Shown in pieces: positions 2,713 to 35,038 of a stretch of DNA of 64,000 bases. The DNA is from Monocercomonoides exilis PA203 (Eukaryota; Protista; Preaxostyla), in the NCBI GenBank assembly GCA_001643675.2, contig LSRY02000054.1:186001-250000 (forward strand), in the 5' to 3' direction. A program made the position numbers and the translations under genes. Each line of letters begins with the position of its first letter. Positions within the stretch are counted from its first letter, which is position 1. Below the pieces are notes generated by a model, which saw nothing but the letters and a program-made list of their open reading frames with translations, searched no databases and was not told the DNA's origin.

Positions 2713-5700
2713 TCAATCCTCAAGATAAGGCTCCTGTGAATCTGAAGGAATATCGATAAGCTTTGCGAGCGTGCCGTAGTCGTTAACAAAATTCAAATAC
2801 CTTGGGTTTTCTCTCTTATTTGCAGTTATTTCAGAAAAGTCTGAATTAATCGAATTTAAAAGGTTTTCATTTTCATTGTATTCTGCAATCCGTCTTTTTT
2901 CCTTCCACTTTTTGCGCACAAAAAGCAACAGGATAATAAATCCGATTCCAACAGTTGGAATAACAGTGGATACAACAATAATCATCACTGTTGATGCGTT
3001 GTCAGCTCTGCCCAGATCCTTTCCATCACTCACACGCAGAGGATAAGTTTCCTGCTCTTTCATCAACGACCGATCATCAAAAAACTTCAAAACTGCAAAC
3101 ACTTCAGCCCCATTTGAACGTTCCACAACGTCCCGAGAGAAAAATGCAGATATTGCATTTTCGCTGCTGCTGCTCAAATTTTCCGTCACTGCAATTTCTG
3201 TTAGCTCAGTGAGCACTTTCCCTCCACTTGTTTTATTTGCCAAAATACGCATCATCAAATAACAGTTGAAAAGATACTTCCCTGTCAGCTGAACTTCGCA
3301 TCCTTCTCCAACAATCATCTTTGAAACATTTTCAGGAAGAGGTGTAAACAGACAAGACATCAGATCATTAGGAAACCCAGTAAGCGAGCAATTGTTGTTT
3401 TCAATCCAAAAGTTATCAGGTAATTCTTCGTAAGTTTCTTCAAAGATTCTTCTTTTTTCGCTTTTGGCAGAATGCTTAGAATAGATCGAGCTTCCAGCAT
3501 CATTAACAAGTTCAATAACACCTTTTCCTTCTTTCTTTGTTTCATCGCTTCTGCATATGATGTTGTGAGCAACACTCGGAAATCCATCTAATTCAATAGA
3601 ATTCCCTTTCATTGATGCAACGTCAATCGATAAATAGCTGTTTTTGGAGTCAATGGCACCAACAAGCTTTGTTCTGAATGTTGTATTTTGCATATCCACC
3701 GAGGAATTAACAAAACTCACAAAGGAGCTGTCCCACATACAGATAGCATTTTCTGTATTTTTCTGTTTATCGTTTGCCGAAGATGCCAAATCTACATAAA
3801 AAAAGCAGCAATCCTGAATGTGAACAGCGCTGCATCCACTCGCTGCCAAAAAGAAACCCTTTCCTGCTGAACGAGAACTGAGGGAGATGTTAGTTCTAAT
3901 CAACTGCAGAGAAATATTAACTGGAATTGAAGAGTTTCTAATGCACGTTGAAATGCGAGAAGGCAAAGAAGAGAGAGAAATATTATGTTGAAATGAAGGA
4001 ATATCTGAAGGAATAGAAGAAAGTGAAGAAGAAGAAGAAGAATGTTCGAATGTATGCTGATTTTCATTATTTTCAATGAAATTTTGTTCCTTAATTGAAA
4101 ACACGATCAAAGATTTCTGATCGCTCACCTTAATTTCCTTGAAGCAGCAATCTTTCAGCTCAACTCTCACTTTGCTTTTTTCGTCAATCCCTGAGCAGTC
4201 AATGAAAAATGAGCCTCTATAAAACAGGACCTTGCTCAGGCTCAATAAGACGCATAGAAGAGTTCCTGTTTCAATTTTGAGAAAAGTTGGACTGGTTGTC
4301 TCCTGTTTCGCAGAGGAGATTGCACATCTTTCTATTTCAAATGCACTTTCATCGTTGATTAAAAAGAGACAGCTCACGGGCAAGTCAGCATTGATCTTCA
4401 CATTCGTGTTATTCATTTTGCAATTTCCTTTAATCGCTACATGGTAATCTGTTGTTCTACTACCTTCCCTCAGCTTTGCTTGCTGCTTTATTCCCTCCTC
4501 TCTATTCACTTCATTCCAGATGCTTTCAAGCTTCAGTCCAGCACCTTCCGTATCACCTTCAATAATAATTGATATCCACGTAACAGAATTGATAAGATAA
4601 ACTTCGCCAATAATGTGCAGAGAAGGCTGCTCTTCTTCTTTTTCAAGACTTCGAATACGTCTTTCGAAATATGAATTGTTTCCTGAGGAATCATGTGCTT
4701 CTTGTGTTGTCGATGGTGATGAAGAAAAAGTGGATAAATGCGTCATTGCATAATTCACTGTGCGGCATGGATCGTCTTTGCTTCCACAGAAAAAGATGTC
4801 CCAACCTCCTTTATCCTTTGAATATTCATCGTTCATACACCGCAAAGAAGTGCAAGATAAGCATGAAGCAGAGGAAGATAAAAGCTCACTTCTGAATTTC
4901 TTCGTCGAGTCTTCCATTCCGCTAACGTAAATGACAGAATTTCTGTATGTGATGAATTCCAGATAATCAACAACTTTGCCTTCTTTTTCGCTTTCTGCTC
5001 CGATAGAGTTTTTCTCGTTCCAAAGTGAATGGTTGAAATTTACGCCAAATTTCTGCGATTCTCCTTTATCTGAGATGCTCGGACATCTGATGAAGATGTC
5101 GCGCCCGATATTCGCCTTGTTCTGAAACAAAGCAACTTCCTGAAACACAAAAGGAAACGTCTGCGAATGAAATGCCAAATATACTGCTCCTCCTTTTGTT
5201 TGATCAAAATAAATATTCGTATCGAGACTGTTATGGCTGAATGTGCAGTTTGTAAAATAAAGCTCACAATTCTCTTCTTCTTCAGCAGCAGCTTCTGAAG
5301 AAACTATTCCTTCTTGATTTTTCTCGCTCCAATAAATACATCCTCCAAAAGGCTCATAATCCTCAGGGCACATAAACCAAGATAATGATGAGTTGTTTAT
5401 TTCCAGCTTAAGCTTTGCGCTTTCCCTACTTCGAAGAAAACGTCCAACCAAATTATTCTCACCTGCACTTTTATAGTATTCTTCTGATTCAGTCAAGGAA
5501 CGCATTTTGTTGCTCGAGAAATTCGATATCAAGATATTTTGAAGATGCTTCTCTTTCATCTTTTTCACCTCGCAGCACTTTATATTTGAAACAAAAATCA
5601 CATCATGCCAAAACCTCAGGTTATCAAATGAAACGTCTTTCAACTTCAATGAATCAGCTTCAAATGCAAGGTCAAAAAAAGTTCCAGTGATCGAAGTATT

Positions 5701-8700
5701 TTCCCCTTTGATACTCAGGTTATTAAAAGATATTCCTCCTCCTTCAATGTTAAAGATCGTGTAATTAATAGACTGCTCTTTAATCATTGAAGAGAAAGAA
5801 ATAATAACATCCTTCCATATTGAGAAACCTCTGATGAAAGTTATTGCGTTCTTTGTCCTACTTGTCATCGCTCGCAGTACAAAATTTATGCCAATAACTG
5901 TAACACTGTCACTTATTAATACAATATCCGTCCAGCTGTCGCTGTATTTAATGTTAACCTCAATTTTCCCCATCATCCCCGTTTCTCTTGACGAACAAAT
6001 TTGAGCCTTCTCCAATGACACAGGAAGTGTTAGATACACAAGATCAATAATTATCAGCTTGCGAGGTTCACAAAGATGAGTCCAACCATACGTTAAAGAA
6101 CGACAAGGTAATTCTTGTGTTCCACAGCGAGTGAAATCCGTTCCAAGCGAAGAAGAAACAAATATTGTGGAATGTTCGTAAGTTGTTAGCAATTCTGCAA
6201 TGCTAATTCCAAACATATAATTTAAACTATCGAAGCAGCCAATTTCCATCCCGTCAATTTCTTTATCAACAAAGCTAAAAATCCCTTGAATGTTAATATC
6301 AAGAAGAGAATATGAATAAAATCTCATATCGCGATATTTTTCGGCAGAATTATTAAAAAATGATAATTGGTCCAAAATTAATGATGCTTCTTTCACTATG
6401 TTTATTGACAATGCGCCTCCGTTGTTTGTCGCTGAACATGACTGAAACGAGCTATTTGTAATTGCTAAGCATGTTCCTTCATATAATGAACAGCCAATAA
6501 ATCCTCCACAGATTGAGTTAGTTGTTATTAAGTCTGCGGTAATATTTCGAATTGAAACAAAATTTCCTTGAAAAAATGCTCCATTAAATAAAATCGGAGA
6601 ATTAATATTTGAACTGATATTTTTAAAAGCACAGTCAACTATCGTAAGATTCAGGATATTCCACACAAAAATTATTGATCGTATTTCATCAGTTGGTGCA
6701 TCAGAAAAAGTTGTTTCAACAATTGTTAGATATGCAAAATTATCCAACATAAAGAAACAAAAATGTTCAGCTTGATTCGAGATTAATGGCTTTCCAGTTG
6801 AAACTAATTTCCTTTGAAGATCGAATGATTGTTCGCTTATGCTGGAACATCTAAAAATCACATGATCCACAATAATTGAAGAAGGTGTTAAATAATCAGC
6901 TGTACCTACAATACTTGAATATGGATATAATTTCATTTTTGGATAAATAACAGCCAGATTTCGCATTGTAAACGTGCTATCTCCAATATCTAAAACAGAA
7001 AAAATTTTTTCATCAAAATTCTGAATATCAATTTCAATCGCTCCTCCACCATTTCCATCAATCTCTAATTCCATCTCCTTTATAGAACAACTGCTTCTAA
7101 CAAACGATTTTGCATTTGAATGAATAACGCATTTTAAATTTTCATTGGACGAAGAATGACTTAACACTTGGGAAAGCGTCTGGCACTGCTGATGTTCCGA
7201 AGAACCGCAAGCAACACTAAAAGGAGCAGTGGAATCCAATTCTATAATTCGTCGAGCAACTTCTAGTGACTTTGACAGAAAAAAAATTTCATCAGGTTTG
7301 CTCCGTTTCATCTGAACGACTGCTCCTTCTTTCAGCTCGGACGTTTTGCACAGAGAAAAGAGCTTGAGTCCATCATCATAATCAGCTTCACTCGCAACAA
7401 AAGCATCATGCCCATATTTATCTGCCGTATTTACAGCGAAATAGCTCATATATATGCAATAAAAATCTTGGTTTCGCAATCGTCTATCACAGCTCAAAAA
7501 TACTGCATTTGCTACAACCACGTAAATTGCTCCTCCATAATTAGCCTTGCAGCCGGAAAAATCACACTCATAGATAAGAGCCCGTTCTTCAACATCCTTA
7601 AGATAAAGTCCGCCTCCGCTTCCTTGTGAATAACATCTCAAAAAGGTACATTGTATGAGCACTGGCTCGACTTCTTTGAAGAATTCGTCTGGATCGGAAT
7701 TCCACTTTGTTTGCATTTTTAAGCAGTTGCCTTCAAATGGAAAGTTGTTTCTTTCACGAATTTGTGAGTAATTATTTTGATGCCATATTGTGTGATTTCC
7801 GCAAAAGTCAGTTTTTCTTTGAGGTATCTGTGATAATTTGCGCTCGAATACGACACATGCATCAGCATTCGAACTGCAATCGAAAAACAGGCATTTCCTG
7901 ATTGCTGGAGAACGAATGCTGATCACATGAACAGCTCCAGCAGTTGTTTCAACATTTTTATTTTCATTTTCACCGTTTATATCTTGGAAAGAAGAGTTTT
8001 CTATGGTTACAGCCACATTTCCAGTCACAAAGATAGCTCCTCCTGATCCGATATAGCTTGCGCAATCTTGAAAATTACAATTTTTTACAGTAAGAGTTAA
8101 AACGGTCTGATCTTGTGTTCTTGCAAAGATGCATTGTCCAAATTCATCGCCTTTAATTCCCTTCCAAGTGCATGAGTCAAACGTAAATTCCTTATCAACT
8201 GAAGGATCTAGGACAACTCTTTCGAGTGTTTCATTTGAATAACGCTTGTTTACCCACCGCGTGCATGAAACGTGTGTTGAGTTAAAATCAATCAATGAAT
8301 GAACGTCAAAAGAGATTGAAGGGATTAGCACGCCATCATACACTCCGTACACATGATTGAAAGCAGAATTTGAAATTGTTATAGAGCAAGAGTTCGGCTT
8401 TTGTTCTTGTATGCTCGCATTTTGCGTTGCACTGATATTGAAAAAAGCAGAATCATGAAACTCCAATGTTGAGTCAATTACAGATGAAGCAAAAAATGTG
8501 GTCGATATTAAAACAGATGAAAATGATGAAGATGACACAGTAACTAAAACAGAAGGATTCCAAATAGGAGAATCACTTTTCATGAATACAAACGAATTCA
8601 TTTCCATGGAATCTATCTGTGATAAAAGTGAGATGTTTTTGAGCTGTAAAAGGCTTCCTGTTTTGGCAAATGAGCTGCCTAATTGTTGTTCTCTCGAAAA

Positions 8701-8958
8701 AACAATGCAACTAACAACAGAAACATTCGAAAAGCCATCTTGCAAAATCGTAGCATCATCGCAGCTTGAAATAATACACTCTTTTTGGATCAATATTGTC
8801 GAGTTTGCGATTCTCATTTTCGTTAGAAAACAGCTCATTTCGCAAAATACTAATTTAGTCCAATCTCCAATCAATTTACCTTCAGCAAGCGCACCATTGC
8901 ATTTTATCTGACCCATATATAATTCAAATTTTCTGTTATCGCCTAAACCAATTGCCAT
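2713..8958 (-). CDS. Large single-pass surface protein with Pmp/pectin-lyase-like beta-helix repeats (at least 2081 aa; 5' exon uncertain)
   Basis: Uninterrupted 2081-aa ORF. Repeated GGAI/GGGL/GGAV and FxxN motifs, CGxxxxPC modules (DFTRCGTQELPCRSL, DIFFCGSKDDPCRTV), and a C-terminal TM helix VMIIVVSTVIPTVGIGFIILLLFV followed by RKKWKEKRR. Confidence 0.85.
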   Translation of the reverse strand: MAIGLGDNRKFELYMGQIKCNGALAEGKLIGDWTKLVFCEMSCFLTKMRIANSTILIQKECIISSCDDATILQDGFSNVSVVSCIVFSREQQLGSSFAKTGSLLQLKNISLLSQIDSMEMNSFVFMKSDSPIWNPSVLVTVSSSSFSSVLISTTFFASSVIDSTLEFHDSAFFNISATQNASIQEQKPNSCSITISNSAFNHVYGVYDGVLIPSISFDVHSLIDFNSTHVSCTRWVNKRYSNETLERVVLDPSVDKEFTFDSCTWKGIKGDEFGQCIFARTQDQTVLTLTVKNCNFQDCASYIGSGGAIFVTGNVAVTIENSSFQDINGENENKNVETTAGAVHVISIRSPAIRKCLFFDCSSNADACVVFERKLSQIPQRKTDFCGNHTIWHQNNYSQIRERNNFPFEGNCLKMQTKWNSDPDEFFKEVEPVLIQCTFLRCYSQGSGGGLYLKDVEERALIYECDFSGCKANYGGAIYVVVANAVFLSCDRRLRNQDFYCIYMSYFAVNTADKYGHDAFVASEADYDDGLKLFSLCKTSELKEGAVVQMKRSKPDEIFFLSKSLEVARRIIELDSTAPFSVACGSSEHQQCQTLSQVLSHSSSNENLKCVIHSNAKSFVRSSCSIKEMELEIDGNGGGAIEIDIQNFDEKIFSVLDIGDSTFTMRNLAVIYPKMKLYPYSSIVGTADYLTPSSIIVDHVIFRCSSISEQSFDLQRKLVSTGKPLISNQAEHFCFFMLDNFAYLTIVETTFSDAPTDEIRSIIFVWNILNLTIVDCAFKNISSNINSPILFNGAFFQGNFVSIRNITADLITTNSICGGFIGCSLYEGTCLAITNSSFQSCSATNNGGALSINIVKEASLILDQLSFFNNSAEKYRDMRFYSYSLLDINIQGIFSFVDKEIDGMEIGCFDSLNYMFGISIAELLTTYEHSTIFVSSSLGTDFTRCGTQELPCRSLTYGWTHLCEPRKLIIIDLVYLTLPVSLEKAQICSSRETGMMGKIEVNIKYSDSWTDIVLISDSVTVIGINFVLRAMTSRTKNAITFIRGFSIWKDVIISFSSMIKEQSINYTIFNIEGGGISFNNLSIKGENTSITGTFFDLAFEADSLKLKDVSFDNLRFWHDVIFVSNIKCCEVKKMKEKHLQNILISNFSSNKMRSLTESEEYYKSAGENNLVGRFLRSRESAKLKLEINNSSLSWFMCPEDYEPFGGCIYWSEKNQEGIVSSEAAAEEEENCELYFTNCTFSHNSLDTNIYFDQTKGGAVYLAFHSQTFPFVFQEVALFQNKANIGRDIFIRCPSISDKGESQKFGVNFNHSLWNEKNSIGAESEKEGKVVDYLEFITYRNSVIYVSGMEDSTKKFRSELLSSSASCLSCTSLRCMNDEYSKDKGGWDIFFCGSKDDPCRTVNYAMTHLSTFSSSPSTTQEAHDSSGNNSYFERRIRSLEKEEEQPSLHIIGEVYLINSVTWISIIIEGDTEGAGLKLESIWNEVNREEGIKQQAKLREGSRTTDYHVAIKGNCKMNNTNVKINADLPVSCLFLINDESAFEIERCAISSAKQETTSPTFLKIETGTLLCVLLSLSKVLFYRGSFFIDCSGIDEKSKVRVELKDCCFKEIKVSDQKSLIVFSIKEQNFIENNENQHTFEHSSSSSSLSSIPSDIPSFQHNISLSSLPSRISTCIRNSSIPVNISLQLIRTNISLSSRSAGKGFFLAASGCSAVHIQDCCFFYVDLASSANDKQKNTENAICMWDSSFVSFVNSSVDMQNTTFRTKLVGAIDSKNSYLSIDVASMKGNSIELDGFPSVAHNIICRSDETKKEGKGVIELVNDAGSSIYSKHSAKSEKRRIFEETYEELPDNFWIENNNCSLTGFPNDLMSCLFTPLPENVSKMIVGEGCEVQLTGKYLFNCYLMMRILANKTSGGKVLTELTEIAVTENLSSSSENAISAFFSRDVVERSNGAEVFAVLKFFDDRSLMKEQETYPLRVSDGKDLGRADNASTVMIIVVSTVIPTVGIGFIILLLFVRKKWKEKRRIAEYNENENLLNSINSDFSEITANKRENPRYLNFVNDYGTLAKLIDIPSDSQEPYLED

Positions 8959-13920: not shown

Positions 13921-16900
13921 ATGCATTTGCTCCTTTTTGCATGTTTGATTCTTGGAAAGGCATTTGAAGCACAAGATATCTCTGGAGCAGCCACATTGGA
14001 GAACAAAGGTATTCTTTCGAATTTTTGTATTTTTCATTATTTGTGTTTATTTTGGTGAAGGAAACTCAAACGATGCGCAATTTCAATCGAAAGTCGATAA
14101 CAATCATTTGTTCCGGCAGAGTTCATTTTCAGGAGAGAAAACATTGCAACCAAGAATATCTACAGTGAAAAACACATTTTTTGGATTCTTCAATTCTACA
14201 GTTGGACTGAAAAATGTGGCACTTGAACATTCTTCTTCACCTTTGATGCTTATCGCAGATAAATCAAGCGTGATGCTGGATTTGTGCATTTCCCACCAAG
14301 AATCAGCATCTCCTTTTCATTTGCAAAGTGGGACTATCAACATGGTGAATCTGAGTTTGACCCCCCAAATGAATGTCAGCCCTTCCAGTCTTGTTTTTTC
14401 ATGTGATGATTCAAATTCTGCCATTTTGAGGAATTCCATCGTTGCAGATCTGGCTGTTTCAGCTTCAGATTATCTCCTATTGTCTGGAAAGAGCAAAAGT
14501 GAAGAGATTTCTAACTGTGCCTTCAGGAACATGTCTGTGAAATCAGGCAAGAACAGTGATTATCAGATGGAGCATTCATGCTTGTTGAGTTCAATGGAGA
14601 ATTGCCTCATTTATGCATGTGTGAATACCTTTGAAGGAGGGATTTCGAGTGGATTGCTTTCTTCAGAGAAATTTGTCTGTAAAAACACAACTTCACACAA
14701 TGGGAAAAGAGAAACAAATGCACTTGAGAAAAAAGGGCAAATGAATTTGACAGATAGCCAATCCTTTTCATTGTGTGAATGGACTGATTGCACAGCACCA
14801 CAAGGAGGTGCTCTTTTTATTCACGACAATGAAAATGCAATTTTAACAGTTGAAAATTCTTCATTCACAAGATGCAGCGCTTCTTTAACAAGAGGGGGAG
14901 GAATATATGCTCAAAGAATTGCTAAATGTGTTGTGCTTCATTCTACATTTTCTCAATGCACAGCAGCAGAGATAAAAATTTATGGGGGAGGGGGAATTGA
15001 TTTAGAAATAATAAATTCACAGTCTATGGTTGATGATTGTTCATTTTGTAACTGTTCTGCTGCCAATGATGGAGGAGCGTTAAGTTACTATCAGGTTAAT
15101 GCTCAAAGACAAAAGTATTGCATTACAAATTCATTCTTCAAATTTTGTCGATGCAATTCTTCACGAGATGGCACAGGAGGCGCCATTCTGCATTGGAGTT
15201 GTACAGACCAAATTATTTTCTCAAATTGTTTATTTTATCATTGTTATTCAATGCATGGAGGAGGCGCTGTTGGCATAATAATTAATAGCAACAATTGCGG
15301 AAAATTATTTTACTACTGCTTTTTTCACAACAATACATGCGATATAGCAGGACATGATATAATGCTCCAAAATTCAAAAGAAAACAATATTGATTCCACA
15401 TGCTATTCTACAAGGCAAACAGAGAACAGAATAAGCTTGGATAATGACAGAATTGTCGATAAAAGCGAATGGCTTCGAAACGATTTTGGAAGAACCAGAT
15501 TTGTCTCTTCGGTACAAACAGAACCCAATGCCATTGATACATATGCATGCGGACGGGATGAAAGCCATCCTTGCTGCACCATCAGCCGCTGTCTCACACA
15601 GCTGATTCCAGAATTTGTTTCCGATATAGAGATACTCACAGGAACGATTTCAGAGACAAAATGTGGGGACTGCAATATCAATTCTTACACAATATATGGC
15701 CAAAGCGATTTGAGCACAACAGTTCAAATTGAATTAGAGGCATCTAGTTTGTCTCTTTTTTCAGTCTCCACAGGAACGTTATCTGTCAGGGACTTTGTTC
15801 TTGTGCATGACTCGGCTCATCCGAATAACGGTGAATCAAGGCTATTTGAGATAAGTGGAACAGGAGAGATGCATATTAGCAGATTGAACATATCAACAGG
15901 ATATGGGCAAACTTCAGAAACAGCTTTTTCAACAGAATTGATAAACATTCAGAATGGGATGTTGCAAATGGAACATGTGAACTGGGCAAAGACAATCTCA
16001 ACAACTTCATTGTTTTCACTTTCTTCAACAAATGAAATTTCATTGACTCTTTCAGAATGCACTTTTAATGAAATAGAAAGAACAACAAGCGGAGCAGCTG
16101 TGATGTCATTTTCGAATGACAAGGCAAACATCGATCTGAATTCGAGCACTTTTGAAGGATGTGGAAGCACAAATTCAGAAAATGGAGGATCGATGATGCT
16201 ATGTGCAGGGAATGAAAACGAAGTGAAAGTGAAAGGCGGGATGTTTGATGGATGCTTTTGCTCAACATCCAATGGTCTTGGAGGAGGAATTCTTCTTCGA
16301 TTATTGAATGAAAATCCAGATTTCCTGATTTCTTCCTCATTTGGATCAAACACAGCCAAATGGGGGAATGATATCTTTGTTCTTTCACCAAATTTGGAAG
16401 TGACTGCAAAATCACAAATAATCACTTGTGTGACAGCCTCTTTGGATTCTTTTGACAAAGTTCGAGGATATGACAATGGAAACATCAGTGTGGCCATTCC
16501 ACTGTGCATCTATCTCCTTCCCACTCCAGAAGAAATATATGTGAGCAATTCTGAGGCATCCGATCATTCACATTGTGGAATTGCTCAATTCCCTTGTTTG
16601 ACAATAAAGCACTCACTCACAAGGCAAACAGAAGAAAAGAAAGTTGTTGTGAATGGAAAGGTTTTGATGAGCGATGAATTGGCATTTGGTGAACAGAAGC
16701 ATGAAATCAAAGGAAACGATGATCAAAGTGGCTGGATAGTCTCCGATATTGAAATTGAATCTGATTTTGCGATGATAACAACAAATGTTGAAACGGACTT
16801 GTCAAAGCTCATCTTCTCTCTTCCATCTTCTCTTTCGTCACATTCCACTTTTATTTCATCAACTTCTTCTTCGTTGACTCTGTCCCATTGTTCTATTTCT

Positions 16901-19900
16901 CTTCAAAATCCATCATCAGAATTGACATTTCTGTTTTTATCTGTCGAATCTGGCACCTTGGCCATTGATTCGTTTTCAGCTTCGTCAATCACTTTGAGTG
17001 GAAATCCGTTAATCTCTTTATGTGGAAGTGGAACAAATACCGAGTCAATGAGCACCAAATGGTTGAACATGACGAAAAGCAATTACACAAAAATCGAAAG
17101 AGCAGCTGGAAGTGGAGGCTGCATCAACATTGACAACATCGTTGATGAAAATACGAACACACAAATAAATATTGAAGAATGTGATTTTGAGGAATGCTCT
17201 GTGCAGGCTGATGGAAGCAGAGGAGGGGCTATCAATGCCCAATTGAAGGGGAGCACTCAAATGAATATTATTTCTTGCACATTCACAGGATGCACAGCTC
17301 CTGCCGAAAAAGAGAAGAATGGATTTGGGGGAGGGATGGCACTGAAGGTGATTGATGACGAAACTTCTTTTGTGATAGCATCGCCCATTTTCGATGCAGA
17401 CAAGCCAAATTCTGCAAAATATGGAAATGACCTGTTTGTTGTATCATTCAACTTGACGAAGAGCATCACAAATGACTCACTTCCATTTGTGTCTGGGCAT
17501 CTGGATGATATTTCATTGGATTCAATGAGGGGCTTTGATGGAAGCGACACAACAAATGCGATTCCACTGGTATATTTCTGGCTTAAACTCGGATCGGAGA
17601 TATTTATTGGAGACAAAGGAAGAGATACGGGTGCATGCGGATTCTCAGATTATCCTTGTCAATCAATTGATTATTCATTGGAGCGAATACTTGAAGGAAA
17701 TAAAAGAAAAATTAACATCATTGGTAAAGGAATTCTCCAGAAATGCGTTTATCTCAGTGGAATATCAGTGAAATCGGATGATGAAGAAATGTGCTCTTTG
17801 GAATGTCACACATCACTTGAAGGAGCAGAAGGAGCAGCAATGAAGATTTCTGGAATTGCCAATTTCGAACTGATTAGCTTTGTGATGCCATCTTCATTCA
17901 CAAATGGAGTCAATTATTTGATGGATGTTGGATCAAGTGAAGGAATATTGACTCTGAAAGACTGCTCGTTCACAAAAAATGAAGAAAGTGGAGAAGAAAT
18001 AATGAATTTTGGACTGATCAAAGCAGATGGAGGCACAGTTGTATTGGAGTTTGTGACAATGCAATTGTTGAGCTTTTCAAAAGATGTAATTTCTGTGTTG
18101 TCAACAACGATATTGAATGTGAAAAACCTGACAATGAAGAATGTTGAGCTGGAGGGAGCAAGCGGATTGAGCATTTCAAAGAGTTCAAGAAGAGAGACAA
18201 ATGAAGAGGAACAAGATGTTCTTATTGAGTGGAGTTCATTCGAAGAAGTCACCCAGAACATAACCAATGATATTCCTATCATTCGAAATGTGAATGATGA
18301 GCCATTGAAAATAGTGATAAGAAACACAACGATGAAAAAATGTGGGGGAACAAGGTGCGGAAAGGGAGGAGGGATGTTTTATGTTTTGAATGAGGAAGGA
18401 AGCTTTAACTGCTCATTTTGCACGATTTCTGAGTGCTTCTGCTCCACCACAGGAAGAGGTGGGTGGCTGTTTCTGGAATGCGCCACGGTGGTTGAGCAGC
18501 CTCTGAATTTTGTTCTTTCCAATATCACGTTCAGAGATAACTCTGCATATAGAGGGAGAGATGTGTATGTTCGATGCCACTCAATCGAAACACAAATTGT
18601 TGAAGAGCAATTCTTGTTGGATTTCAGATCGCCGTTTGTGAAAGAACTGGCTTTATGGGGCTGCACAACAGATTCTTTTGTGAGGGAAGAAGATCTTTTG
18701 CTGAGAGTTGTGAAATACCAGAGCGAGACGATATTTGTGTCATCAGTTGCAGATAATCACACAGACAGCAAGCAATGTGGAGAGTTCAGTATGCCTTGTC
18801 AATCGCTGAATGTTGGAATCCAGCACGTTATTCCATCTCTGTACTCACAGCTGTTGATATCAGAAGAGACAATAATCAATGGAGAAAGCAGTGCTTTGAA
18901 TGTGATCATCCGCTCATTGCAATCTCCTTCAGCTGCTTTGGTGCATCTGAACTCAACAATTGCAGGTGATTCTGGAAATCTTTTCACAATCTCAGAGAAA
19001 GTTCGGATTGAGAGTGTGAAATTCAACATTGGCCAGTTGTTTTCGTATTCGGGCAGTTCAATTATTCATGAAGAAAATGGACAGCTTTCTCTTTCATCTG
19101 TTTATTTTTCTTCGATTTTGGAATCAGAAAACATTGAATCTGTTCTCAATTCAACATTGTTGAGCATCGAAAATGGAATTCTTCATATTGACAACTGCTC
19201 AATATCAATGCTTTCGTTCAAGAAGCCTTCATTTTTGCTGAATGGAGATGGTGTCTCAATCACAAATGTTAAACTGGAAAATATTGATTCAATAACAAAT
19301 ATATTTGAGATTGGCAGTTGTGGAAATGTTGCTTTCAATGGAATTGATGCTAATGGGATGAAGCTGTCTGATTGCTGTATCATTTCGATAAACTGTTCAG
19401 CTTCAGGAACAATTACTCTTGTTGATTCATCATTCAATAACTGCTCAAGGAACTCAGAAGGAGCTTCAGTTTTCTCAGCATCTTCATCATCCGCTCACAC
19501 AGTTCTTTCCAATTGTTCGTGTTCCAACTGCGTTTCTCACTCTGATAAAGGGAGCATCATGGAACTTGACAACATGAAAGATGCTCATATGAATATGTGT
19601 GAGCTTGAAGGAATTCTTTCAAAAGAAAGTGAAAGCGAGAGAAATAATGATTTCAGAGAAATATGTGAATGGAATGGATCGCTTGTCCATTCAGCGAATT
19701 CTTCACTGGTGATGAAATATGTTACAATATTGAATTCTTCATCTGGTGGGTTATCCATATCTGCTGGCAATATGACGATTGAAAAAGGTGAGTTTGTGAA
19801 CAACAATCCATTCATTGTAAAATATCCTTCTCTTCGAAGAAACATCATTTGTTCAGGTTCTGCTTCATTAACCATCACCAGCTTGAAAGGTGGAGATGGA

Positions 19901-21670
19901 CAAGAGAAGAATTCTTCTCTTTGGATTCTGAATGATGGATGTGATTTGAGAGGGATAGCAGGAGAAAGGTCATCTCCTTTCTTCATTACAGTTCTGGACA
20001 AGGCGTCTGTGAAAGAAAAGGACAGCGATATTGTTTTGAAATTCAAGGGATCACTTCTTCTTCCTTGTGACTTGTCATTCAGATTGATATTCAAAACAGG
20101 GGATGTGGAGTTGGTTGAGACATATCCATTTGAGGAAGACAGTTTCATATCAGAAACGGAAGTGATTGGGAAAATCCCATCAGAAAATATTTCAACGATT
20201 GCAGATGAAACAGAGGTGTCGGTGATGATATTGTTTGGAAAGCAATTGGCTGCGACAAGCCCACAGATTGTGAAAAACAAAACAGAATCAAAGGTGAAAG
20301 GAGATGAAAGGATTGTTGAAGGAGGAAAAGAAGGAAAATCTTACTGGTTGTTGATTGTTCTTGTTCTTGTTGTGATTTTATTGATAATTCTAATCTCACT
20401 TGTGATTTTCATTGTTCGATGGAGGAAGGCAAAGAATGAAGCGAAGGATTTGAGAGAGATTGTGAATGACAACATCAAAAAGGATCCGAAAGCGTTTGAG
20501 ATGGTGACGATGGAGATGTCACCAGAAGAGCAATGGAGGAGAGCAGAGAAGGAGGGAGAGAAGAAGAACGAGGAAAGGATAATGAAGAGAGTGTATGATA
20601 CGAATATGCAACACTCGGAGTCATCAGAGCATCTTCTATCTGAAAGTGGCTCCACTGAATGCATATTGGGAAATGATTCAGACAAGATCCCAGAATGGAT
20701 GTTGGAGAAGGTTGATGATGAAGAAGAGATAAGGAAGAGAACGCCATCGCCATCTATCTCATCCACTTCAACGACCGATTCTGATTCCACTTTTATCCGA
20801 CCAGAGAGTCTGTGTCCCACCACCTCATCGATGTCGAATCTGGTGGATGCAATGGCATGCTCTTCGCCACATGAGAAGCTGATTGTGGATCTGAGAGATT
20901 CACTGTTCATGCTGCTTCATGGAAGGAATAAGACAAAAGAGATGGCGATTGGCACATTGAAGGAAAGAGAACAAACAGCTGCTCAGATCCTGTTCTGGGT
21001 AGCTAATCTGGCACTCCACTCATTTGACGAGATGGAAAACCCACTTCAGTCACTTGCCAATCTGAGTCCTCACATTGTTCTCTTCTCAGAGCACATGGTG
21101 ATTTGTATTGTGATGCATTCTGACTTATTGTCAGATGATGATTCAGATTCATCCTCCATCTCTTCATCAACAGTTGTGACATCTGCCAGTGATAACGATG
21201 AAAGTGACTCTCTACCCTCATCAGCGTTTGAGGAAGAAGATAGCTTCAAAAAAGAGTGCTTGAGATGGAAGGCACCAGAGCTGTTGATCAACAAGAAGAT
21301 GGGAGCAACGAAAAAGACAGTGGTGTTTTCGATTGGGATGATGCTGTGGGAGTGTCTGACTCTTCAAATCCCATTTGGAGAGTATGAAGCAGAGGCAGCT
21401 GGGCAGAAAATTGTGAATGGAGAAAGGCCGAAGAATGAAGCCAACAATGGAAGCATGAGCGCACTGATTGGACAGTGTGTTTCAGCAGTTCCAGAACAAC
21501 GACCTTCTCTGATTGGACTGAAACGAGAGTTCATTCAGCGTTTTCCAGCAGGAGCTGTTATCATGACTGTGTCAGATGCTGTGGATGTTGAAGAAGACAC
21601 AAATAGAAGGAACAATGAAAGTGGAAGTGGAAGAGGGAGTTGGGGTGGGAGCTTGTTCAGTGAGAGATGA
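13921..21670 (+). CDS. Giant receptor-like surface protein: signal peptide, beta-helix ectodomain, TM helix, degenerate TKL-like pseudokinase tail
   Basis: Exon 1 (13921-14008, MHLLLFACLILGKA signal-like) joins the 2572-aa ORF in frame through a 52-nt GT..AG intron (14009-14060). GGA/GGG motifs, CGxxxxPC modules, TM WLLIVLVLVVILLIILISLVIFIV, then kinase C-lobe motifs RWKAPEL, VFSIGMMLWE, IPF and QRPS. Confidence 0.85.
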
Positions 21671-30750: not shown

Positions 30751-31222
30751 TATTTGTATTTCAAATTTCAAATTCCACAATAACAAATTTTGAAATTTTT
30801 TTAACATTTCATTTTTTCACAAGCATGCAAACATCAATGTGAAATTTTCTACAAAAAAAATAATAAGTTAAAAATAAAAATATGCAATATAATATAAACA
30901 CTCCAATAAACATTTCAACAAAAATTGGAACTTTAATATTCTCTTGTTGTCTCGAACAACCAAATGTTACCAAAATTGAATGGTTTTTGATCAAATTACT
31001 GTGAAGGAAACAAGTTTTAGACAACAAGAGAATATTAAAGTTCCAATTTTTGTTGGAACGATTAATAAAGTGTATATTGTATGTGGAATATTTTTATTTT
31101 AGGACTTCATTTTTAAAAACAAAGAAAATTTCATATGAATACTTGCATGTTTGTGAAAAAATGAAATGAGAAAAAAGTATCAAAATACAATATCTTGAAA
31201 CTTGAAATTTGAAACATAAATA
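30751..31222. mobile_element. Foldback element / long inverted repeat, about 470 bp
   Basis: Perfect 37-bp inner arms (CAACAAAAATTGGAACTTTAATATTCTCTTGTTGTCT and its reverse complement), with degenerate pairing out to both ends. Confidence 0.75.
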
Positions 31223-31477
31223 TGTGATTATTTTTGTAATTTTTTCATTTCAATCTGATATTTCGATTTGAGAATTTGTTAATAACATTGAGTATGTTAA
31301 CTGAAAATGAAAAATGCAATTTCATTGAAATTTTTTCTTTTGCATTTATCTCAGGCATTGGTTGACGTGACAATTATTATAATTTAACATTTGTTTGAAA
31401 AAATTATTACGAACAACATTGGACGGCTTAACAATCAACACACCTAAAAAAGATATGATTTCAAAAATAATCATATA
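31221..31477. mobile_element. Degenerate family-B MITE, about 256 bp
   Basis: Starts TATGTGATTATTTTTG and ends AATCAACACACCTAAAAAAGATATGATTTCAAAAATAATCATATA, like the copy at 54751-55006. Confidence 0.55.
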
Positions 31478-32251
31478 TTTCCAAAATGATGACCTATCAT
31501 TTGAAAAGATATAAAATAGAATCACACTTATAATGAAGTTATTTTTGACTTTTTTAAACAATTGTGCTTTTTTTGAAGGAAAATATTTCTGCAATATTTT
31601 TTACCAAAAAACGTTCATGATTTCAAAAAAACGGCTATCTTCTCTTTTCTAATTTCGTTGAAAAAAATAGTGTTAAAATTTGTCAAGACGTTTTCTCCAA
31701 AAAAAGTATTTTTGATAAATTGTATTTTTTTAATTTATTCAATAAAAAAAATCGATAAAACATTTTTGACAAGTTTGATCAAAGATATTCTATCAATTCC
31801 ACAATCTTTTTGCTTCAGACATCCTGTGGCTGTATTTTTATTTTCTTTGAATATGTGAACAATAAGACATAAGTCTTCTCTGATAAATGAAATTAAATTG
31901 AATAATAGGGTGATTTATAAACCCGAACTTTTTTTTAATTTTGGTTTGAAATATAAATATTTATTTTACAAGCAATCATGTTTTAATTTCGAAAATTGAA
32001 ATGATCAATAATAAACATAATCAACAAGTTCTCTTTTTACAATTTTTCTGGAATTTTTCTGCTTTGAAACATCATCCAAAATATTATCATTCAAAATGTG
32101 AGATTTGTTTAATCTTTTTTTTGGGTTTTTCAGCTGCGAAAATAATTTATTCTTCTTTTTTATCATTATTATCTTTTTTTTCTTTTCTCATCTTATCTTC
32201 TTTTCTTTTTTTCCATTCTTAAAGAAATTGTTATTCTGTTATAATTTTTTT

Positions 32252-33856
32252 TTAAAAATCAAACCTATGTGTTCTCTTTTTCAGTGTCACTGAAGGTTCC
32301 TTTGGAAGTTTTGATAATACTGAATTCCACTCGTTTGGTTGCACGCCACTTTTTTTAAACGAAGAAACAACAGTTGCAGGAAGTAATTCCGTCTGAAGCG
32401 GTTGTTGAAGAACGTTTGAAATGGACTCCCGTCGGAGAAAAATAAAAGAATCCGGAGGTACAGAGTGTAGAGAGTTGATGCATTTTTTGAATACTGCAAA
32501 CACACCACGATCAAGAGGTTGTGTGATGTGTAAGCTGTGCGGAATAAAAGAAACGAATTTAATGTTGTTATCGGCAAATTTCTGCCAGATATCTGACTGA
32601 GCCCGAGAAGAATGAGAATCCAAAAGAAGAAAACATCTTTCATAGTTCTTTATTTAAATATCACTTCTTTTGATGATTCCATTCAATAAAACCTCTTCTG
32701 CATATGTGTGATTATTTTTGAAAGCAAAACTTTTTTCGGGGTGTTTTTTTTCAAAGGTTGTTTGTCACTGGGAAGAGGTTTTGTCCACAATTTGTGTAAT
32801 TATCACAATTGTTTAATAAACAAATCTTTTAACTCAAATAAAGATGTTAGTGTTTTGAAAGGCCTTTTCATTTTTCAGTGTTCATTCATTGACATTCGAG
32901 AAATACTTTTTAACCGAAAATTTTGAATGAAAAAATTTGATTTCAAAAATAATCACCCATATCTTTTGAAAATGCTTTCTGTCATCCATCCTTCATTGTT
33001 GTACCAAACATCAATGCTTACGCTCAGCAGAACTCGCATTTCCTTTGGTAATTTGTGGCATGGCCACAACACAATGCTTTTGAGAGAATATCCATCTGCA
33101 GCAGCTGTTACAACCAAAGTGGCATTTGGCATGTTTGTGGGTGTTGTATGAAATCCAGCTGGAACTCCTGTGGGGTGAATCACAAGAGTTTTGAAGGAAT
33201 CCGATAAGCGGAGTGAAGATTCATCGGTGTTAAAGATTAAAGAAGGTGAATAATGATGTGAATTGTGAAGATTTTGCAGAAGCTCGTAGAAAGGAAGAAG
33301 AACTTGTTGATTGGATACCGAAAGACGTTGGATATCCACATTTCTGGGCATGGAAGCTTTGAGCTCAGAATTCCTTTTTGCAAATAGATATGGATATGAT
33401 TTGGACACACTGGTGGTTTCATCAACATCAGTTTCTGATCGTCTTTTTTTGTCGGAAAGGACGGATTCCATCTGAAAAATATTTATAATTATAAACGAAA
33501 GATAAATAAATGTGTAATCAAACTAATTCTCTTGTTCTCTTTGTATTTAAACTTGTTCCGGATAAACTTTCGATTTTAATAACTCCAACAATTATATTTT
33601 TGTCCTCTTCATTGAATAGTTCTGGCCTGCCAGGTTTTGCAACAGCTCTGCCGCTTTCAATTGCTGAAACTGCTCTTATTATTGCTGAACGAGAGAACTC
33701 TTTGGTATTTATTGCGTCAACGATTCTGACATGTCCGTCAACAACTATGCGCGCCATGCGTTCCAAAAGATTTTCTATTTGTCTGTAGTCAAATGCCATC
33801 ATTTGATTTCTAATGTTTAACAATCCTTGTTCTGTTTTGATTTTGAAAACACTCAT
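32252..33856 (-). pseudogene. DDE_1 (pogo/Fot1-like, DD35D) transposase with one intron, one stop and a MITE insertion
   Basis: KPGRP; FNTDES; GWMTESIF; LLDSHSS, 35 residues, QPLD. 52-nt phase-0 GT..AG intron at 33472-33523. In-frame TAA at 32654-56. Removing 32705-32959 plus one TA restores FKRYAEEVLL. Confidence 0.88.
32705..32959. mobile_element. 255-bp MITE (family B) inserted in the transposase
   Basis: TIRs TGTGTGATTATTTTTGAAA / TTTCAAAAATAATCACCCA. TA at 32703-04 and 32960-61. Confidence 0.88.
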
Positions 33857-33960
33857 GATAAAAAAATTTTGGTAATGATCTTTTTTTATTTTTTTAAAAA
33901 AAATTTTTTTAAGAAATGAAAAAAATTAAAAAAAAATTTTTTTCGATTAAATTCTAACTT

Positions 33961-34084
33961 AGTCAGCCCCGTTGCTATTACCCAATCTCCTCAGGGGAGG
34001 CACTAATCAGAGATGGAGGAGCTAACCCCCCCCATCTCTCCCCATCAGAGATTAGGTATAGTAATTTGATCTTAATTTCTGACT
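33961..34084 (-). ncRNA. Candidate structured RNA leader upstream of the transposase
   Basis: GC-rich island forming nested stems whose non-Watson-Crick positions are G.U only on the minus strand. TATATAAG lies just upstream (34103-34096). Confidence 0.45.
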
Positions 34085-35038
34085 TCTGACTATTCCTTAT
34101 ATACTGAAAACAATATAAAAAATATAAAAAGTGGGAAAAATCAACTTATTATTAAAAAAAAAGTCCGGGTTTTTAAAAAAGTTCGGGTTAATAAATCACC
34201 ATACATTTTTTTCTAAATAAAGTTAAAGATTAGAAATTAATTATTATCCTAGTGTTTCAATTTTTTGAAAATAAGAAATAATAAAAAAAACAGAAAAAAT
34301 AATCGGATAAAAATAACAGCAAGCACGATGCTTGAAACAAAAAGATTGTGAAAATCAGAAAGTGTCTTTTATCATGCTCATCAAACAAAAAATTATTTCG
34401 TTTTTTTTATGAAAAAATAAAAGAAAAATAAATCAAAGAGAAAAAGGAGTATTTCGTTTCATAATTATTAGTCAATTTCTTTTTATAATTGAAAAATGAT
34501 TGCGAAATAACTAGTAATTGAGTATTTTTCAAAAAAAAAAAATTATTTTGAATATGCTTAATAACTAGTTATTTCACAAACAAATTTTCATTTTTTCAAA
34601 CTTTTTCATAATAAAACATCGAAAGAAGTTATTATGAATTCAAACTTTGAGTTTGAAATAGAGTTATCTCAAATAAAAAAGTTTCGATTCAAAGTTTTGG
34701 TTATTATTCTTAATCTTTTTTTTTTCTTTGTTCATTCATTTTCTTGTAAATTCCATTAATAGACTGAGATTATTATTTTGTGAATTGTTTCTTTCTTTCT
34801 TTTTAAACTTCCTTTGAAATTTCGATTATAATCATTTTTTCTTCATTTTGTTCAGCTCTGATAAACAAGATAGAATTATATTTATTTTTATTTTTATTCT
34901 TTTGCTTCAATGTTTAATTTTGAAGAAATGAAGAAGTGAATTTAATGATTGAAAAAATTATAAAAGAAAGCCTCAAATATTTGTCAAAATAATTATAAGA
35001 AGAAAGTAAATAAAAATATTACAATAGAGTCACAAAAT

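Follow-up and report, generated by a model that had tools for sequence, protein, structure and literature searches.

The window, as we call the whole 64,000-nucleotide stretch of Monocercomonoides exilis PA203 DNA analyzed here, carries a decayed pogo-type (DDE_1) transposon of ~2.3 kb on the minus strand (31908–34201), delimited by its inverted repeats, a DDE_1 match, and copy boundaries. The element has TA flanks and terminal inverted repeats that start with GGGTGATTT; the repeat pair at 31906–31934 and 34175–34203 is 29 nt long and 93% complementary, and TA is found directly outside GGGTG in four aligned pogo copies, as a target-site duplication would leave it. The transposase domain DDE_1 (PF03184) scores 24.8 bits on the broken piece in the window and 53.6 bits (E 2.7e-14) on an intact copy (L032). 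The DDE_1 domain, the inverted repeats, and the TA duplication identify the host element as a pogo/Tigger-type DNA transposon. Two subterminal direct repeats, AACCCGAAC and AACCCGGAC (34163–34189, minus strand), emerge from the alignment of four intact representatives and are presumed to be transposase binding sites. They vary by subfamily, with two copies of AACCCGAAC in some of the four representatives and two copies of TATCCGGAC in others, and the repeats of distant pogo clades read TATTGGCAC or ATCTYGACC.

The transposase is encoded by two exons on the minus strand. Exon 1 (ORF1, 111–112 aa; 33518–33856) has no Pfam match, the CENP-B/psq-type helix-turn-helix included, in searches run with the exons singly rather than joined. 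A 52-nt GT..AG intron (33472–33523, minus strand) joins ORF1 to ORF2 in frame, and the same junction, UUA/GUUUG ... CAG/AUG, recurs in other clades; in all pogo clades examined (L032, L070, L072), the two ORFs are joined in frame by a spliceosomal intron of ~50 nt whose donor, GUUUG(A/U), is unusual. Exon 2 (32252–33471) contains the DDE_1 domain and is broken in the window copy by frame changes and by a ~250-bp MITE (32711–32960), a private insertion that other copies lack. This MITE, whose ends read ATATGGGTGATTATTTTTG..., has a related copy 1.2 kb away at 31218–31480, matches the pogo ends over its first ~10 bases only, and lacks the leader hairpin. Elsewhere in the window lie two very long intron-free ORFs, 13952–21670 (2,572 aa) and 2713–8958 (2,081 aa); the former ends with a protein kinase domain, which fits the reported expansion of the kinase family in M. 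exilis.

Immediately past the TATA box that the transposon carries, a domain of ~130 nt (34071–33945, minus strand) is encoded in sense orientation and is predicted to consist, at the RNA level, of a closing helix P1, a central hairpin P2, and a spacer or small hairpin, P3. The TATA box (TATATAAGG, 34095–34103, minus strand), the presumed core promoter, is a single match in the window and is kept in all clades; its first T lies exactly 58 nt before an upstream AUG in every lineage, including the leader of a second transposon family (DDE_3) described below. About 32 nt past that first T starts the 5′ strand of P1 (GAUCAAAUU, 34063–34071, minus strand), which abuts P2; the 3′ strand (AAUUUAAUC, 33945–33953, minus strand) starts 23–29 nt beyond P2, leaving the two strands ~100 nt apart. 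The 5′ strand was assigned from the consensus fold, a C-G/U-A switch, and a matrix of cognate duplexes, and the 3′ strand from folds and the same matrix; the P1 helix of the window copy has a C.A mismatch. The upstream AUG (34043–34045, minus strand) sits at the start of the first G tract and is present in every intact copy examined, across all clades, being lost in a few decayed copies. All five structural variants keep the G-tract core (34026–34043, minus strand) unchanged, with the family consensus G7/8-ARAU-G7; the window copy has an interrupted first tract (GGGGAGAG) and a second tract of G8. The long hairpin P2 (33975–34061, minus strand) is built from an outer helix, an internal loop, the G-tract region, an inner helix, the apical loop UUAG, and a 3′ bulge, as assigned from the fold, conservation, and covariation. 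In the spacer (33954–33974, minus strand), where P3 is weak, a GGGG motif (CAACGGGGCUGAC...) corresponds to CAWGGGGYAU, found in three of the four pogo variants; P3 forms a clear hairpin in the C42- and C91-type variants.

Farther along the leader, 15–35 nt before the ORF1 ATG, alignments of the pogo clades reveal the motif GATCATWACC (GATCATTACC in the window copy; 33871–33880, minus strand). It is kept in nearly all pogo clades, hairpin-less ones included, is replaced by GATCTTAAAA in the C42-type variant, and is missing from the DDE_3 leader. Its resemblance to a TCAYW initiator makes it a possible initiator element or, alternatively, a translation context. An A/U hairpin, U8-CAUUUC-A8, is conserved downstream of the domain in main and C42-type copies (~33903–33928 in the window). 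Splice-donor-like strings, GGUAAUAG, GGGUUACA, or GGGUAACA, lie directly 3′ of P2 (33975–33982 in the window and equivalent positions in other clades), and the element's own donor string GUUUGU occurs within the P1 3′ strand of the C33 and C42 variants. We considered a leader intron starting from the GGUAAUAG string at the base of P2 and rejected it, as no consistent acceptor is found across clades.

A first-pass annotation had proposed that a strand-specific structured RNA lies in the transposase leader of a eukaryotic DNA transposon. This proposal is borne out: all of the elements that it listed are found on the minus strand of the window, and the hairpin belongs to a DDE_1 pogo element. The outer stem of P2 pairs 34061–34047 with 33990–33975 and contains one bulged A. 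Above it follow a GAU/UGA internal loop, GGGGA paired with UCCCC, a bulge of 11 nt (9–11 nt overall), and an inner stem, GAGAUGG.../...CCAUCUC, closed by the loop UUAG; AGUCAG lies upstream and GGGGCUGAC downstream. RNAfold assigns the minus strand of 33950–34110 an energy of −55.1 kcal/mol (z −3.3; 0 of 200 shuffles as stable), and the plus strand of the same segment −42.8 kcal/mol (z −2.5). Several finer points need adjustment. The internal loop described as tandem G.A is present in the window copy, but its positions are Watson–Crick paired or unpaired in other clades. The distance to the ATG, given as ~105 nt, holds when counted from 33961 and is 119 nt from the 3′ end of the hairpin to the ORF1 ATG (33856). 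The claim that imperfect positions are G.U on this strand and A.C on the other is sustained across the variants, which have many G.U pairs and almost no A.C, but the outer-stem G.U of the window copy (UUGGG, 33983) arose from an A>G change found only in this decayed copy, and the family consensus pairs perfectly there. The two additional pairings once envisaged are lost. Intact subfamilies have GGGGUAUUAC or no GUCAG in place of the sequence that would form a pseudoknot between the apical loop and GGGGCUGAC, and the outer pairing AGUCAG/CUGACU is likewise gone from them, in both cases uncompensated.

The sequence G7/8-ARAU-G7 satisfies, in all five variants, the sequence rule for an RNA G-quadruplex (four tracts of at least 3 G, separated by short loops), with tract lengths that rest on a nanopore-based assembly. 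When quadruplex energies are included in ViennaRNA, a G-quadruplex enters the minimum-energy fold of the C48-type variant only. Even where a U lies opposite, the tracts keep G in place of the better-pairing A, which suggests a second role, either as a G-quadruplex that rivals the hairpin or in protein binding. The second tract is expanded to 18–26 G in four copies (L084, L087, L094, L100), through slippage or nanopore homopolymer error. A functional peptide from the upstream ORF was also considered and rejected: although the AUG itself is kept, neither the reading frame nor the peptide past MGG is conserved.

We searched 82,301,135 bases in 101 contigs of the nanopore-based genome assembly and recovered at least 40 full-length matches to the 161-nt hairpin segment, at 86–96% identity, together with 1,235 candidate places for the transposase ORF2, whose amino-acid identity ranges from 46 to 100% among the 103 that were scored. 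Clustering 42 distinct copies by ORF2 gave four main subfamilies, for which mean nucleotide identity was computed within and between groups. The hairpin is the most conserved part of the pogo element, with an identity of 0.878 within and 0.875 between subfamilies. The corresponding values are 0.87 and 0.83 for the TATA region, 0.77 and 0.66 for both the transposon ends and the downstream leader, 0.89 and 0.61 for ORF1, and 0.91 and 0.60 for ORF2. Among the four intact subfamily representatives, the hairpin is 0.94–0.98 identical and the rest of the 2-kb element 0.5–0.77. No fixed hairpin differences separate lineages whose coding regions diverge by 40%, and within a subfamily, the hairpin decays like the rest of the element. 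Constancy between lineages together with decay within subfamilies points to selection on the active lineage, not on the inserted copies. The first-pass annotation had made its proposal depend on sister elements, and there the hairpin is both present and under selection. One pogo lineage with an intact ORF (L076, G000:C7:800530–800880) has a different leader without the G-tract hairpin module. The same lineage has three TATTGGCACC end repeats.

Covariation, which had been named as the test of the structure, gives opposite answers at two levels of comparison. Within the main clade, there is none: 92.6% of cells are paired versus 92.4% in shuffles, the RNAalifold covariation term is ~0, and substitutions among copies of the closest clade hit pairs at random. 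Neutral decay of copies after insertion accounts for this null result, which is uninformative about the active element. Random breakage of pairs, the outcome that was to count against the structure, is real at this level but is overturned by the comparison between clades.

Pogo clades at 46–49% amino-acid identity share the same leader architecture with different arm sequences. Common to all five variants are the TATA box, the 58-nt spacing, the core AUG-G7/8-ARAU-G7-UU, the inner helix, the outer P2 helix, and P1. The core 5′-AUG-G7/8-ARAU-G7 has 66 exact matches in the genome, versus 0 for the reversed pattern. In the inner helix, the second G tract pairs with a pyrimidine strand in which C and U are the only alternatives; the helix is 100% paired and undergoes only G-C to G.U switches. 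In a 15-sequence alignment across clades (A6), five pairs of the P2 outer helix are changed on both sides, compared with 2.8 ± 0.9 in shuffles (9 of 500 reach five) and 0–2 in slid registers, and the P2 covariation score is 0.223 versus 0.138 (0 of 500 shuffles reach 0.223); the set amounts to about five related, non-independent lineages of one genome, and these shuffle counts overstate the significance. When each 5′ strand of P1 is paired with every 3′ strand, cognate duplexes average −12.2 kcal/mol and non-cognate ones −4.6 ± 1.8 kcal/mol; for the P2 arms, the energies are −15.0 and −7.1 ± 3.1 kcal/mol, respectively. At closer range, two compensatory pairs in P1 separate L091 from L092, copies of the fifth variant, and a C-G to U-A switch in P1 distinguishes main-clade subfamilies (24 concordant versus 5 discordant copies). 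Folds of the sense and antisense strands give −57.9/−47.9, −41.3/−29.9, −49.0/−22.3, and −34.0/−27.3 kcal/mol. The C42-type variant has the sharpest contrast, with a sense fold at z −6.1 and an antisense fold (z −0.6) that is no better than shuffled sequence. The sense strand is 7–27 kcal/mol more stable than the antisense because of its G.U pairs. Both the covariation and this strand asymmetry support an RNA structure on the sense strand.

The fifth variant was recovered with a model of the module (R2) and precedes a DDE_3 gene instead of a pogo gene. The DDE_3 transposase (530 aa, 80.4 bits) is intact at L105/L106 (G000:C91:1638700–1640950), with its ORF ~110 nt past the end of the domain and ~200 nt past the upstream AUG, and BLASTP finds no similarity between this protein and the pogo protein. 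At least 12 copies make up the family, which splits into two subfamilies with 60% identity to each other, and at least 4 copies have an intact core just upstream. The module therefore heads at least four diverged pogo clades and one unrelated DDE_3 (Tc1/IS630-like) family in this genome, and it has stayed constant in active lineages while the transposases and the end-binding sites diverged. Every module instance sampled, in the fraction of genomic hits inspected, adjoins a transposon. Because the module is common to two transposase superfamilies, it is likely to act through host machinery and to have been exchanged or captured.

Known RNA classes do not account for the module. In Rfam 15, the window has 0 matches at the gathering threshold and its best sub-threshold scores are at chance level; at permissive thresholds, nothing is found for the window copy, a consensus copy, or three distant variants, in keeping with the earlier suggestion of an undescribed RNA. 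A tRNA scan found none. The UGAU/UGAG-like loop recalls kink-turn or box C/D motifs (RUGAUGA and CUGA boxes, conserved tandem sheared G.A pairs beside a 3-nt asymmetric bulge), but the loop GAU/UGA is symmetric, the C33- and C42-type variants have C-G, A-U, and U-A/U.G pairs at these positions, and the C48-type columns are unpaired; the score for SNORD90 is 18 bits, below its cutoff of 41. A guide or bridge RNA, by analogy with IS110-type elements, was set aside because the end repeats change from one subfamily to another and the hairpin does not. A transposase-binding repeat was likewise rejected, as the hairpin motif occurs only once in the element and does not vary along with the ends; the only 8-mer that the hairpin shares with the rest of the element, direct or inverted, is one UCUCUGAUU string within the coding region. 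Beyond this genome, an exact 28-nt pattern has 0 matches in metagenome and viral contigs, and a transposase profile search of metagenomes returned one relative, at 24% identity, without the hairpin.

The hairpin module is very probably a new regulatory RNA element, as judged from comparison of its sequence across lineages. The mode of action that we favor, which we rate a little short of an even call, is that the module forms the 5′-terminal part of the transposase mRNA and is a cis-acting gate on transposase expression, operated by host machinery and not by the transposase. In eukaryotic initiation, a stable structure with an AUG near the cap should strongly limit scanning. The start site, predicted from the TATA box alone to lie 25–35 nt past it, would put the start of P1 no more than a few bases from the 5′ end. 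Folding energies of −34 to −58 kcal/mol so close to the cap, combined with the upstream AUG, would then limit or gate scanning and, in turn, transposase synthesis. The G tracts could alternatively form a G-quadruplex, which would turn the module into a two-state gate. Three considerations weigh against a gate of this kind. First, the mean 5′ UTR in Monocercomonoides exilis is 62 nt (PMC8767320), and GATCATWACC could be the real mRNA start, with the domain in a separate transcript. Second, the main ATG lies ~120 nt downstream and is not sequestered. Third, the lineage L076 has an intact ORF without the module, so the module is not indispensable.

The main rival takes up the first of these points. 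The module could be a separate, trans-acting small non-coding RNA of ~130–150 nt, driven by the TATA box and with its ends paired in P1, that binds a host protein or regulates transposition or silencing, for instance, while the transposase mRNA starts farther downstream. We regard this as unlikely. P1 joins the predicted 5′ end to a strand 23–29 nt beyond P2, an arrangement that many stable small RNAs share, and the main, C42, and C91 variants have runs of at least 4 T within ~15 nt after P1; such runs are lacking after P1 in C33 and C48, however, and T runs and AAUAAA-like strings abound in DNA as AT-rich as this. The initiator-like GATCATWACC, 15–35 nt before the pogo ATG in hairpin-less lineages too, agrees with a downstream mRNA start, as does the short typical 5′ UTR, and the portability of the module between two transposon families also counts in its favor. 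On the other hand, the DDE_3 leader lacks GATCATWACC and yet keeps the same ~110-nt distance between domain and ORF, for which one promoter serving the ORF is the simplest explanation, and among the instances inspected, no copy of the module lies away from a transposase gene.

Selection could also act on the DNA itself, with the G tracts as a promoter-proximal element (a non-template G-quadruplex or a nucleosome-excluding tract) and the arms as factor sites or a cruciform. The rigid 58-nt spacing to the TATA box and the persistence of G opposite U, on the sense, non-template strand, would fit. We nevertheless consider this improbable: the arm sequences turn over completely while their complementarity is kept, unlike protein-binding sites; the variants have many G.U pairs and almost no A.C, and the C42 antisense fold stands at z −0.6; and the two strands of P1 are ~100 nt apart.

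It is distinctly improbable that the hairpin serves as a Dicer-type substrate, a hairpin-RNA or microRNA-like precursor whose small RNAs would hold the activity of the element in check. In its favor are the length and stability of the hairpin, its presence in a repeated element, and weak microRNA-precursor scores, far below threshold (mir-627, 19 bits versus a cutoff of 86). Such precursors do not typically have a 9–11-nt bulge, internal loops, and homopolymer G tracts of this kind, however; this reading would leave unexplained why certain unpaired bases are invariant, why P1 exists, and why the promoter spacing is fixed; and selection on a transposon to silence itself should be weak. A self-cleaving ribozyme or pseudoknot switch, as the first-pass annotation had entertained, is hardly credible: ribozymes are known in retrotransposon leaders, and the window copy has mutual complementarity among its apical loop, GGGGCUGAC, and AGUCAG, but these pairings are not conserved in intact subfamilies, and no Rfam ribozyme family, HDV-like, hammerhead, and twister included, reaches E ≤ 10.

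A broader hypothesis takes in the cis-acting gate and the small RNA alike. Promoter and three-helix RNA of ~130 nt, with its G7-N4-G7 core, may form a portable cassette that moved between DNA-transposon superfamilies and works as a two-state hairpin/G-quadruplex switch read by a host factor or as a stable, trans-acting small RNA that controls transposition. We advance this tentatively and think it somewhat unlikely; if true, the regulatory RNA carried by these transposons would belong to a class that has not been described among eukaryotic cut-and-paste elements. The near-invariance of the domain across transposases of 46% identity, its covarying helices, its fixed distance from the TATA box, and its occurrence in both pogo and Tc1/IS630-like elements point to a host-dependent expression step that both families must pass. 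The G7-N4-G7 core, P1, and P2 would offer a handle on how genes are expressed and transposons controlled in an amitochondriate protist whose promoters and leaders are almost uncharacterized, and the module would qualify as a candidate for a new RNA family.

In bacteria and retroelements, structured leader RNAs that regulate transposition genes have been studied in depth, and our literature search found no such structure described for eukaryotic cut-and-paste DNA transposons. In bacterial insertion sequences, leader structures limit transposase translation, as in the fold-back inhibition of IS10, the 5′ stem-loop of IS200, and the 5′ UTR of ISPpu9 (see PMC8450116 and PMC5006887). The module resembles these in being a stable structure in a transposase leader, selected at the level of the element and plausibly keeping transposase low. 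Whereas the bacterial structures sequester the ribosome-binding site or start codon, the main ATG is free here; the module also differs in belonging to a eukaryote with scanning, in its three helices and invariant G-tract core, and in its presence in two transposase families.

RNA G-quadruplexes are known in 5′ UTRs, such as that of NRAS, and G-quadruplex motifs occur in the LINE-1 3′ UTR and in plant LTRs. The G7-N4-G7 core likewise fits G3N1G3-N4/5-G3N1G3, lies near a presumed mRNA 5′ end, and is conserved in a transposable element. Unlike in the known cases, the tracts are also paired to a covarying pyrimidine strand, and the candidate quadruplex would compete with a helix. To our knowledge, there is no G-quadruplex case in a cut-and-paste DNA transposon.

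Constitutive transport elements and HDV-like or hammerhead ribozymes sit in retroelement RNAs, and LINE-1 5′ UTR promoters undergo modular replacement. The transport elements of simple retroviruses and IAP are, like the module, extended imperfect hairpins with conserved loops that are read by the host. This likeness is a functional analogy only: they occupy the 3′ part of an unspliced retroelement RNA and have twofold-symmetric loops, with no match in sequence or structure to the module. As with the HDV-like and hammerhead ribozymes of non-LTR retrotransposon 5′ leaders, the module would be a structured RNA at a transcript 5′ end, but it lacks the nested double pseudoknot, the catalytic core, and any Rfam hit, and its candidate pseudoknot is not conserved. 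In LINE-1 5′ UTR replacement, a promoter-leader module is exchanged between lineages independently of the coding regions, as appears to have happened here; in M. exilis, the shared module is predicted to be a folded RNA domain, and the exchange would have taken place between two DNA-transposon superfamilies.
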